DNA of 64,000 nt from Macrostomum lignano (taxonomy: Eukaryota): positions 380,134-444,133 of the forward strand of contig NIVC01000177.1 in assembly GCA_002269645.1 (NCBI GenBank). The letters are read 5' to 3'. The position numbers and the translations under genes are program-made. Shown here piece after piece: positions 12,077-28,796 of this stretch. The notes beneath the pieces were generated by a model. The model saw only the letters and a list, made by a program, of their open reading frames with translations. It was not told the DNA's origin and made no database searches. The first letter of the stretch is position 1, and every line of letters starts with the position of its first letter.

Positions 12077-15000
12077 ATGCCGCTGACTTTAGGCAGTCTC
12101 CAGCCCTGGCTTGTATGCCTCGCCATCATTCTCGCCCTCCCGATCGGCAGCCCTTGCTCAGCCATGCTGTACACAGCCGGAGTCAACCACACCGAGATGA
12201 CCAAGAACATCACCGAGACGCTCAACAGACTGCTGGACAACTACGACAAGAACCTCAGGCCCGACTTTGACGCGCAGCCGGTTACTGTGCGCATCAACAT
12301 GAACATCAGGAGCGTCGGTCCCATCTCTGAGAAGTCCATGATATTCTCATTCGACTGCTACTTCAGGCAGGAGTGGATGGACGCCAGGCTCACCTTTCCA
12401 ACTCATCACAACTTTTCGCACCTGCAGCTGAACGAGAAAATGCTCAGAGACATCTGGAAGCCGGACACGTACTTTGTGAACGGCATGGGCTCGTACTTGC
12501 ACAACATCACGTCTCCGAATGTACTCTTCAGGATTAACAGCACCGGGCACATTCTCTACTCAATGAGACTCACCATCAAGGCCAATTGTCCCATGAATCT
12601 GCTCAAGTTCCCCATGGACACCCAGGTGTGTCCGTTGGTGGTGAGTAGTCACGGCTACACAGAGGCAGATGTGGTGTACGAGTGGAGCAAAGGCGATGAG
12701 TCGATTCAGCTGAACAAAGACCTGCTGTTGTCCCAGTTCGACTTGCGCAGTGAGTCAGCTGTGCTGTGCTAACTTAGGTCTGTGTCAAAGTTTGTTTTGA
12801 GTCATTTCGAGACATTCAGAGTCGATGGGTTATTGGGTGGCTTCTCTACTGAAGTTGCTTCCGTGCCTTTGAGTTGATGGTGTGGCTTCTCTGTCTCTGC
12901 TGGAGTTTCTTCCGTGTGTTTGAGTTGATGGTGTGGCTTCTCTGCTGGAGTTGCTTCCGTGTCTTTGAGTTGATGGTGTGGCTTCTCTGCTGGAGTTGCT
13001 TCCGTGTCTTTGAGTTGATGGTGTGGCTTCTCTGCTGGAGTTGCTTCCGTGTGTTTGAGTTGATGGTGTGGCTTCTCTGCTGGAGTTTCTTCCGTGCTTT
13101 TGACCTGATGGTGTGGCTTCTCTGCTGGAGTTGCTTCCGTGTGTTTGAGTTGATGGTGTGGCTTCTCTGCTGGAGTTGCTTCCGTGTCTTTGAGTTGATG
13201 GTGTGGCTTCTCTGCTTGAGTTGCTTCCGTGTCTTTGAGTTGATGGTGTGGCTTCTCTTTCTCTGCTTGAGTTGCTTCCGTGTCTTTGAGTTGATGGTGT
13301 GGCTTCTCTGCTGGAGATGCTTCCGTGTCTTTGAGTTGATGGTGTGGCTTCGCTGCTGGAGTTGCTTCCGTGTCTTTGAGTTGATGGTGTGGCTTCTCTG
13401 CTGGAGATGCTTCCGTGTGTTTGAGTTGATGGTGTGGCTTCTCTGCTGGAGTTGCTTCCGTGTGTTTGAGTTGATGGTGTGGCTTCTCTGCTGGAGATGC
13501 TTCCGTGTGTTTGAGTTGATGGTGTGGCTTCTCTGCTTGAGTTGCTTCCGTGTCTTTGAGTTGATGGTGTGGCTTCGCTGCTGGAGTTGCTTCCGTGTCT
13601 TTGAGTTGATGGTGTGGCTTCTCTGCTGGAGTTGCTTCCGTGCTTTTGACCTGATGGTGTGGCTTCTCTGCTGGAGTTGCTTCCGTGTCTTTGAGTTGAT
13701 GGTGTGGCTTCGCTGCTTGAGTTGCTTCCGTGTCTTTGAGTTGATGGTGTGGCTTCTCCGCTGGAGATGCTTTCGTGGCTTTGAGTTGATGGTGTGGCTT
13801 CTCTGCTGGAGTTGCTTCCGTGTCTTTGAGTTGATGGTGTGGCTTCTCTGCTGGAGATGCTTCCGTGTCTTTGAGTTGATGGTGTGGCTTCTCTGCTAGA
13901 GATGCTTCCGTGCTTTTGACTTGATGGTGTGGCCTATATTAGAGCTTTCCGTGTGGTTTTCTGGATTGATGTTCACCAACGGTTTATTATAAACTATATT
14001 GCATAAGATTTTTTACGACATCCACCCCAGAGATCCCACTGAACAAGGCTCGAATCAGGATCGGGAATCGGGGCCGATTCTCTGTGCTGAGCTGCCAATT
14101 TGAGTTGCGGCGCCATATGGGCTATTTTCTTCTGCAGGTGAGTTGGCCTGTGTTGGAGCCGTCATGGGACCCATTTTAATCAGGCTGGTGTCCCAGTGTA
14201 AACAACAAAATAACGTTGTGTACTCAGTACTTCAAGGTATGATTTCTCAAGTTAATTTTCGAGCTTTATGCATCAGCCGTGTCGGCCAACTTCTGGTCCG
14301 TTTCCGAGAGCTTTTCCCGACTCTAATCGATAAAGCCAACTGAAACTGCTGATAAGAGGAGGCCAGTAGGGTCTGAAAGATGTGGGAGAGGATTCAACCG
14401 GAACTTAATGCTCGCTTGATATAGCAAGTAAATAATCTTCTATGTGATTAAGTATTCATAACTGAAATTATAGCTCTGCTGCAAAGCAAAATCTGGCATA
14501 GTGGTCTCCTGTTTCACCCTCTCACTCTGTTTCACCCTCTCACTCTGTTTCACCCTCTCACTCTGTTTCACCCTCTCACTCTGTTTCACCCTCTCCCTCT
14601 GTTTCACCCTCTCACTCTGCCTCATCCTCTCCCTCTGTTTCACCCTCTCACTCTGCCTCACCCTTTCCCTCTGCTTCACCCTCTATCTCTTTTGCCCTCT
14701 CACTCAGTTTCACCCTCTCACTCAGTTTCACCCTCTCACTCAGTTTCACCCTCTCACTCTGTTTCACCCTCTCACTCAGTTTCACCCTCTCACTCTGTTT
14801 CACCCTCTCACTCAGTTTCACCCTCTCACTCTGTTTCACCCTCACTCAGTTTCACCCTCTCACTCTGTTTCACCCTCTCACTCTGTTTCACCCTCTCACT
14901 CTGTTTCACCCTCTCACTCTGTTTCACCCTGTCCCGGCCTCAGTTTCACTCTCTCACTCTGCCTCACCCTCTCGCTACCTTCTGTCTCACTCTTAACAAC

Positions 15001-27700: not shown

Positions 27701-28796
27701 GCAACTCAAGCAGAGAAGCCACACCATCAACTCAAAGACACGGAAGCAACTCAAGCAGAGAAGCCACACCATCAACTCAAAGACACGGAAGCAACTCAAG
27801 CAGAGAAGCCACACCATCAACTCAAAGACACGGAAGCAACTCAAGCAGCGAAGCCACACCATCAACTCAAAGACACGGAAGCAACTCAAGCAGAGAAGCC
27901 ACACCATCAACTCAAAGACACTGAAGCAACTCAAGCAGAGAAGCCACACCATCAACTCAAAGACACGGAAGCAACTCAAGCAGAGAAGCCACACCATCAA
28001 CTCAAAGACACGGAAGCAACTCAAGCAGAGAAGCCACCCAATAACCCCATCGACTCCGACTGTCTCGAAAGGACTCAAAACAAACTTTGTCACAAAGACC
28101 CAAGCACAGTACAGCTGACTCACTGCGCAAGTCGAACTGGGACAGCAGCAGGTCTTTGTTCAGCTGAATCGACTCATCGCCTTTACTCCACTCGTACACC
28201 ACATCTGCCTCTGTGTAGCCGTGACTGCTTACCACCAACGGACACACCTGGGTGTCCATGGGGAACTTGAGCAGATTCATGGGACAATTGGCCTTGATGG
28301 TGAGTCTCATTGAGTAGAGAATGTGCCCGGTGCTGTTAATCCTGAAGAGTACATTCGGAGACGTGATGTTGTGCAAGTACGAGCCCATGCCGTTCACAAA
28401 GTACGTGTCCGGCTTCCAGATGTCTCTGAGCATTTTCTCGTTCAGCTGCAGGTGCGAAAAGTTGTGATGAGTTGGAAAGGTGAGCCTGGCGTCCATCCAC
28501 TCCTGCCTGAAGTAGCAGTCGAATGAGAATATCATGGACTTCTCAGAGATGGGACCGACGCTCCTGTTGTTCATGTTGATGCGCACAGTAACCGGCTGCG
28601 CGTCAAAGTCGGGCCTGAGGTTCTTGTCGTAGTTGTCCAGCAGTCTGTTGAGCGTTTCGGTGATGTTCTTGGTCATCTCGGTGTGGTTGACTCCGGCTGT
28701 GTACAGCATGGCTGAGCAAGGGCTGCCGATCGGGAGGGCGAGAATGATGGCGAGGCACACGAGAGGATGCTGTAGACTGCCTGAGTTAAACAGCAT
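24722..28796 (-). CDS. Cys-loop ligand-gated ion channel subunit, GABA-A/GRD-like, copy 2 (inverted paralogue, 459 aa). Exons 28796-28124, 26479-26373, 25321-24722
   Basis: Same exon sizes as copy 1 (673/107/600 nt) and same intron phases. Exon 2 reads RIPISRDTLRMGRRGSFSALMCHFEFERHMGYFLLQ; M2 reads SDRIALSITTVLTMTF. Confidence 0.93.
25411..25470 (+). mobile_element. Fragment resembling a hAT/Charlie-type DNA transposon or MITE terminus
   Basis: cagaggttggcaaacttcgaccctcaggccacatgcggccc resembles the CAGGGGTxGGCAAAC...GGCC..CGGCCC termini. The partner end was not found. Confidence 0.4.
26567..28040 (-). repeat. Same 45-bp minisatellite in intron 1 of channel copy 2 (inverted)
   Basis: Plus-strand unit gcagagaagccacaccatcaactcaaagacacggaagcaactcaa; source of ORF 26525-28123. 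Confidence 0.95.

Follow-up and report, generated by a model that had tools for sequence, protein, structure and literature searches.

Probable partial concerted evolution of two inverted GABA-A α-like/GRD-like receptor genes in Macrostomum lignano

In a 64,000-nucleotide (nt) stretch of the Macrostomum lignano genome (contig NIVC01000177.1, positions 380,134 to 444,133; hereafter the window, within which all coordinates are given), two genes for Cys-loop receptor subunits face each other: gene A (12077-18964, plus strand) and gene B (28796-24722, minus strand). Comparing the two segment by segment, we observed two young tracts that have diverged by about 1% and three old tracts that are near saturation at silent sites. 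The genes are probably old inverted duplicates under partial concerted evolution, the mechanism of which we infer to be gene conversion from arm to arm. The original prediction, made from the letters of the window, had likewise proposed an old duplication kept alike by conversion, and to that extent our analysis supports it: synonymous divergence (dS) is 0.04-0.05 in the young tracts versus a silent-site difference of 0.85 in exon 2, and trees built from the different segments appear incongruent.

Divergence between the two copies and its proposed history

Having read the splice junctions and assembled the exons, we rebuilt both gene models with GT-AG introns throughout, confirming that two genes of three exons each converge here. 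The exons measure 673, 107 and 600 nt in both genes, and each coding sequence of 1380 nt forms an intact open reading frame (ORF) of 459 amino acids. Exon 1 (12077-12749 in A, 28124-28796 in B) encodes, as read in A, the signal peptide and the extracellular domain through loop F, and ends in phase 1 at the donor A/GTGAGT; exon 2 (14031-14137 in A, KIPLNKARIRIGNRGRFSVLSCQFELRRHMGYFLLQ; 26373-26479 in B, RIPISRDTLRMGRRGSFSALMCHFEFERHMGYFLLQ) encodes β9, loop C, β10 and the pre-M1 segment; and exon 3 (18365-18964 in A, 24722-25321 in B) encodes M1-M4 and the stop codon. Intron 2 is 4.2 kb long in A (14138-18364), where it consists mostly of tandem arrays, and 1.05 kb long in B (25322-26372); the two are unrelated, as the original prediction had stated. 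Near the end of the intron in A, a (TCTA)n microsatellite of about 1 kb and 264 units (17309-18344) stops some 20 nt short of the exon-3 acceptor and occupies the place of normal upstream intron sequence, where B has ordinary unique sequence.

We estimated nonsynonymous divergence (dN) and dS for each segment by the Nei-Gojobori method, and tested the clustering of the 83 coding differences by permuting them in 1e5 trials. Codons 1-13 are old: 14 of their 39 nt differ, six of the 13 residues are replaced and the proportion of synonymous differences (pS) is 0.70, in line with the predicted divergence of the start of the signal peptide. From codon 14 to codon 224, the exon-1 core, only 6 of 633 nt differ (dS 0.038), with one replacement in 211 residues (I77N). 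Exon 2 differs at 43 of 108 nt and at 15 of 36 residues (dN 0.32), and its pS of 0.85 is saturated. The first 32 codons of exon 3 (codons 261-292; 18365-18460 in A) are also old, with 16 differences in 96 nt, of which 14 are silent and two are the replacements V287I and T291I, at M2 1' and 5'. The distal remainder of exon 3, codons 293-459, differs at 4 of 501 nt (dS 0.05) and in no residue, so that 2 of 199 residues differ over the exon as a whole. The residue counts previously given for the three exons are thus upheld, and the exon-2 peptides prove correct provided that codon 225, which is split (AAG, K, in A; AGA, R, in B), is counted in.

This heterogeneity, with dS far from uniform across the exons, is not a matter of chance. 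A and B share perfect runs of 336 nt (12307-12642 in A) and 419 nt (18461-18879 in A, 25225-24807 in B), and none of the 100,000 permutations matched the longest identical run (P<1e-5). At third codon positions, 44 of 81 sites differ in the old tracts versus 8 of 378 in the young tracts (Fisher p=1e-30). The tract edges are sharp and both fall within exons, at nt 40 and nt 877 of the coding sequence. The prediction that the copies are homogenised everywhere except in the loop-C exon therefore stands only in part: exon 2 is indeed unconverted, but so are codons 1-13, intron 2 and 32 codons of exon 3. Nor do the regions of low divergence correspond to exons, as had been supposed: the unconverted block has its edges at the end of a minisatellite and inside exon 3 rather than at the boundaries of exon 2. 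The GC content of third codon positions (GC3) is 79-80% in the young tracts versus 59-67% in the old ones (p=0.012 for A, 0.0004 for B), a difference in the direction expected under GC-biased conversion. At the start of exon 3 (18365-18460 in A, 25321-25226 in B), GC3 of the M1-M2 loop and the beginning of M2 is 4/13 in B and 8/13 in A.

The mosaic extends into the non-coding sequence. Scanning positions 10-31 kb for inverted repeats, we found two pairs of long arms, 12073-12770 with 28103-28800 (97%) and 18358-19092 with 24594-25328 (96%), along with many matches between two arrays of 45-bp units. The first young tract occupies 12116-13933 in A, on the plus strand, and pairs with 28757-26941 in B; its exonic part carries 6 differences in 634 nt, and it ends with the 45-bp minisatellite. 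Homology outside the coding sequence is confined to the young tracts, where it comprises the opening 87 nt of intron 1, which have diverged by about 12%, together with the 45-bp arrays and a second pair of arrays with 57-bp units. Intron 2, the roughly 90 nt between the intron-1 array and exon 2, and the 5' flanks could not be aligned between A and B, and a sensitive blastn comparison of the central blocks and the 5' flanks returned nothing but 84 nt of exon 2, at 71%. The unconverted central block thus begins where the intron-1 minisatellite stops, takes in exon 2 and intron 2, and reaches 96 nt into exon 3, with M1 and the start of M2 inside it. That alignable non-coding sequence survives only in the young tracts fits conversion, since after an old duplication none would be expected to remain.

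The segments also differ in the relationships that they support. The best matches to A and B overall are M. lignano models in UniProt, of which P0001, P0002 and P0218 model B and P0003 models A; P0001 and P0003 match the window at 99.5-100% over the shared exons. As an outgroup we used a further paralogue, C (P0005/P0219), whose exon 1 has 76% identity with those of A and B. In neighbour-joining trees, the young segments unite A and B in 100% of bootstraps, whereas the old block, of 71 amino-acid columns only, groups A with C in 72% and A with B in 23%, the clade of A, B and C receiving 95%. Within exon 2, A and C share 25 of 36 residues, A and B 21, and B and C 20. Such apparent incongruence would fit conversion between inverted arms. 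Because the old-block tree recovers the A/B/C clade at 95% and A with C at 72%, exon 2 of B would appear to belong to the same subfamily, its split from A being about as old as the split from C.

Each young tract has one edge exactly at the end of a minisatellite that is common to both genes. The 45-bp array of intron 1 comprises 24 heterogeneous units in A (12837-13933, plus strand) and 32 units in B (26564-28037, minus strand), and the two arrays have unit variants in common, including a rare 51-nt variant; since 21 of the 32 units are identical, the array in B has expanded recently. On the 3' side, the final 13 codons and their stop (FNLGYWTLYLKVL, then stop), together with 16 nt of 3' sequence, make up the 57-bp unit. 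In A it is repeated 5.6 times (18924-19242, plus strand), the first unit being the last 13 codons and stop of the gene itself, while in B 87.5 units in the opposite orientation (19711-24760, minus strand) fill the whole intergenic or 3' region. Both arrays terminate at one phase of the unit (…CTGAAGG), flanking a unique, AT-rich spacer of about 469 bp (19243-19710) in the middle of the inverted structure. Across 18924-24760 each unit re-encodes the C-terminus with an in-frame stop, and there is a higher-order periodicity of about 1 kb.

From these observations, we propose the following history. A GRD-like or GABA-A α-like gene would have undergone an old inverted duplication that left the two copies convergent, both of which stayed functional. 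Non-reciprocal recombination between the inverted arms would then have repeatedly overwritten two segments: the exon-1 core with the proximal part of intron 1 and the 45-bp minisatellite, and the distal part of exon 3 with the 3' 57-bp minisatellite. Conversion would have ceased early both at the far 5' end and over a central block that takes in the distal part of intron 1, exon 2, intron 2, M1 and the beginning of M2; these would have kept their original divergence, saturated at silent sites, while the young tracts, because conversion needs high identity, would have been kept similar continuously since the duplication. The central block would now be excluded for want of continuous homology, exon 2 being a 107-bp island amid unalignable, repeat-filled introns. 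In mouse cells, efficient conversion is reported to take an unbroken stretch of homology longer than 200 bp, and the estimate for humans is 337-456 bp (PMC3966225). As exon 2 is 107 bp long, about 60% identical and set between unalignable introns, and so falls below the reported homology length, no selective protection is needed to account for its divergence.

Conversion has repeatedly been linked to minisatellites and inverted repeats (PMC3966225), and the arrays described here may well have served as initiators or boundaries of it. We stress that arrays in these introns are not special in themselves: all 64 kb are dotted at intervals of a few kb with minisatellites, whose periods are 12-81 bp, as is usual where a genome is so rich in repeats. 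The notable point is that the same arrays are found in A and in B.

Predicted subunits and the exon-2 differences

Both predicted proteins match the Pfam families PF02931 (Neur_chan_LBD; E 3e-48 for A, 9e-47 for B) and PF02932 (Neur_chan_memb; E 6e-33 for A, 8e-34 for B), and the Cys-x13-Cys loop, CPMNLLKFPMDTQVC, is readable directly in each. Their closest solved structures are all GABRA1-6, that is GABA-A (γ-aminobutyric acid type A) receptor subunits α-1 to α-6 (E about 1e-95), and M1-M3 and M4 align to the α-1 chains. The closest named proteins are annotated as 'GABA receptor alpha-like' or GRD, come from many invertebrates and are 43-56% identical. The motif preceding M2 is ATSDR rather than PAR in both A and B, and AT[AS]DR in every aligned relative, which is the GRD-type xDR pattern with an acidic residue at -1'. 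We therefore assign A and B, on their sequences, to the Cys-loop subunits of the GABA-A α-like/GRD-like type, a placement founded on the best structure matches and the named database hits rather than on a formal tree of the superfamily. Both copies have been under long-term purifying selection. The similarity of M1 and the beginning of M2 at the protein level likewise reflects purifying selection and not homogenisation, because the differences there comprise 14 silent and only two replacement changes.

An alignment made with HMMER to GABA-A α-1, to whose structures the sequences match at E about 1e-95, places exon 2 on β9, loop C, β10 and the pre-M1 segment. Loops A, B, D, E and F are all encoded by exon 1 and are common to A and B, and the flatworm proteins carry His and Val at the positions of α-1 Y159 and H101. 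We take residues G236-F241 of A and B to correspond to α-1 S204-Y209. Two of the 15 residue differences in exon 2, N237R and R240S, are at the tip of loop C (equivalent to α-1 S205 and E208), and a third, R251E, reverses a charge beside the conserved pre-M1 Arg. Both versions retain the family-conserved F241, S242, L244, F248 and R252-Q260, and the 15 changes are at positions that vary across the family generally. The sole replacement in the mature exon-1 region, I77N (codon 77 of B, 28566-28568), creates an N-R-S glycosylation sequon in B that is absent from A; the third copy P0004 has Ile, as A does.

The original prediction took loop C as the agonist face of these subunits, a role that does not suit the α/GRD-like type to which the GABA-A α-1 structures and the SDR (not PAR) motif assign them. 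α-type subunits give the GABA site its complementary face, with loops D, E and F, and the α-type loop C faces a non-agonist or modulatory interface. Since the GABA site should not be lined by an α-type loop C, the exon-2 differences, by analogy with that type, are likely to alter the (+)-interface, partner or gating properties rather than the agonist site. GRD lacks the PAR motif and forms cation channels with LCCH3 (PMC2064938), and louse GRD expressed alone is non-functional (PMC11037462). By this analogy, cation selectivity and a β-like or LCCH3-like partner may be expected for A and B as well. The outcome of the process that we propose would be two subunits identical in loops A, B, D, E and F, the Cys-loop, M3, the intracellular loop and M4, and different in the β9-loop C-β10 hairpin, M2 1' and 5', the start of the signal peptide and the promoters; these differences may have functional consequences.

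Alternative explanations

Several points weigh against partial concerted evolution as we have described it. The comparison is between two sequences only, from a single assembly, and the outgroup test rests on 36-71 amino-acid columns with a bootstrap of only 72%. Divergence rises towards the arrays rather than falling, so that a role for them as initiators finds no direct support. Divergence in exon 3 is also non-monotonic, being 7% over M1 (4 of 57 nt) against 31% over codons 280-292 (12 of 39 nt; p=0.004) and then 0%, which would not be predicted if the loss of homology had simply spread from the intron. The peak over codons 280-292 coincides with the two M2 replacements; it leans towards selection, and we have no explanation for it.

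This last observation bears on the strongest of the alternatives, namely that conversion would homogenise the whole gene were it not that selection for a difference in loop C or the (+)-face purges exon-2 convertants. Peaks centred on selected sites are what models of selection versus conversion predict, and in addition to the second peak, which falls exactly on the two M2 replacements, residue differences are concentrated in exon 2 (15/36), where they include the two at the loop-C tip and R251E. Divergence islands so interpreted are known (PMC3728101, PMC7042247). Exon 2 has no excess of replacements, however, its dN of 0.32 being well below a dS that is saturated; the changes are at family-variable positions and the conserved ones are kept, with the loop-C tip holding only 2 of the 15. 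The unalignable flanking introns would make conversion of a 107-bp exon mechanistically unlikely with or without selection, and signal-peptide codons 1-13 are equally old, for which loop-C function gives no reason. The predicted protection of, or selection on, the loop-C exon is therefore neither needed nor shown. As the force that keeps exon 2 apart, selection on loop C is unproven and we consider it somewhat unlikely, although it is compatible with partial concerted evolution as an added force. In a more elaborate form, which we think unlikely, selection would hold apart both the exon-2 and the M2 1'/5' peaks, making the locus a two-gene cassette: one scaffold maintained by conversion, with two co-adapted (+)-face/M2 variants under unrelated promoters. 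Crossovers in the inverted exon-1 and exon-3 arms could then flip the interior and swap the pairing of promoter and variant, as a segregating inversion polymorphism.

The arrangement might instead be an artefact of assembly, through a mis-join within the 5-kb 57-bp array (of separate loci, haplotypes or homeologues of this hidden-polyploid genome) or through perfect tracts created by polishing with mis-mapped reads. Repeats are extremely abundant in this genome, long arrays flank the junction, and UniProt holds at least four B-type models against one A-type, which suggests redundant contigs. We nevertheless find an artefact quite improbable. The arms are no simple palindrome, since they differ in array length and in introns and have diverged by 1-40%; the 469-bp spacer is unique, both arrays stop in one unit phase, and the window contains no Ns. 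One public model, P0001, continues from B into the antisense of A exon 3, but it may derive from the same assembly. A mis-join would in any case leave the mosaic divergence itself in place.

Very improbable, in our judgement, is a recent inverted duplication, one copy of which later acquired the old-looking segments from an unlinked third paralogue through ectopic conversion or recombination. M. lignano has several copies of the subfamily (models P0001-P0005, P0218 and P0219), and B lies outside A and C in the old block, at the 72% given above. Against this, no donor paralogue was seen in the 64-kb window, whose only other Cys-loop gene is about 30% identical, and C shares only 20/36 exon-2 residues with B and 25/36 with A. 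Two separate imports from one old source would be required, on either side of exon 1, and the segment concerned, of about 1.2-5.4 kb including a whole non-homologous intron, is not what simple conversion transfers.

That an ancestral gene carried two mutually exclusive versions of exon 2, one of which was lost from each copy after a recent duplication, would predict an old exon 2 within young flanks and has precedent in the cassette exons of ligand-binding regions in this superfamily (PMC2064938), but it is scarcely credible here, and we rejected it, since codons 1-13 and codons 261-292, the first 32 of exon 3, are also old and go unexplained, tblastn detects no remnant of a second exon 2 in gene A or B, and there is no offset intron homology.

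Neighbouring sequence, gene models and related systems

Head-to-tail upstream of B lies a third Cys-loop gene (33564-41095, minus strand), about 30% identical to A and B. It has the anion-type P-A-R motif before M2, which is visible in the N-terminal part of P0002, and one of its introns contains a 2.5-kb C-rich array of 13-bp units (36379-38936) with a GC skew of about -0.8.

The public models that we examined against 12077-28796 (UniProt A0A1I8FV63, A0A1I8IYR8, A0A1I8HW25, A0A1I8FRT7 and A0A1I8GI26) are mis-built, and four of these five skip exon 2, either by reading through an intron ORF or by splicing to a cryptic acceptor that precedes exon 3 by 18 nt. The models found to skip exon 2 are P0002, P0003, P0004 and P0218. 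P0002 (A0A1I8IYR8) wrongly fuses the upstream Cys-loop gene to B. P0004 (A0A1I8FRT7) is apparently a further B-like copy, with I77 and an extra Gly in the M3-M4 loop, and would thus imply further copies of the locus in that proteome. Contig searches for the locus or its orthologues elsewhere, made with P0001, P0005 and the exon-1 and exon-3 ORFs of B, found no encoding contig, and a profile search centred on exon 2 returned only short GRD-like fragments from other phyla and no second Macrostomum exon 2 of either type.

Human Y-chromosome palindromes are an example of arm-to-arm conversion in inverted duplications. Like these and inverted segmental duplications, A and B are inverted arms separated by a spacer and kept near-identical by what would be intrachromosomal non-reciprocal exchange, and the inverted orientation makes crossovers non-deleterious, the result being an inversion and not a deletion. 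Unlike the palindromes, they are homogenised in just two short stretches, of about 1.8 kb and 0.8 kb, rather than over whole arms, their introns are unalignable and of different length, and the centre is a minisatellite derived from coding sequence.

Primate L/M opsins are mosaic paralogues with divergence islands that persist despite conversion. So are GOT1p1/GOT1p2 of Tigriopus, a documented mosaic produced by conversion (PMC3728101), and a ruminant CEACAM1 paralogue (PMC7042247). As in all three, tracts of very low and very high divergence alternate between the linked paralogues A and B, and the island overlaps a functionally relevant segment. Selection in those cases was supported by population or multi-species data, whereas here we have one genome, in which loss of flanking homology suffices as a neutral explanation.

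The subunits themselves resemble insect GRD subunits, which are GABA-A α-like and form GABA-gated cation channels with LCCH3 (PMC2064938, PMC11037462), in their domain architecture and in having A-T-[AS]-D-R in place of P-A-R; they differ in that A, B, C and others form an expansion specific to the flatworm lineage and known here from sequence alone. Mutually exclusive cassette exons occur in other Cys-loop genes, namely exons 3 and 6 of insect RDL and the nicotinic acetylcholine receptor (nAChR) subunits α4 and α6 (PMC2064938). These likewise give alternative forms of a short extracellular stretch on a common scaffold, but in A and B the alternatives reside in two genes with unrelated promoters and not in one spliced gene.

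Our search of the literature found nothing specific on gene conversion among Cys-loop paralogues or in M. lignano. That linked inverted paralogues evolve in concert as mosaics is itself well known (PMC3728101, PMC7042247), and A and B would be a tidy new example. The mosaic alone is no demonstration of selection on ligand binding. Annotation is also affected, since the public M. lignano models of these genes miss exon 2 or splice it wrongly and join adjacent genes. The pair probably represents a compact, well-delimited instance of partial concerted evolution in neurotransmitter-receptor genes, with tract edges that can be resolved to a few nt. Differing almost only in β9-loop C-β10 and in two M2 residues, A and B also constitute a natural chimera pair for structure-function work.

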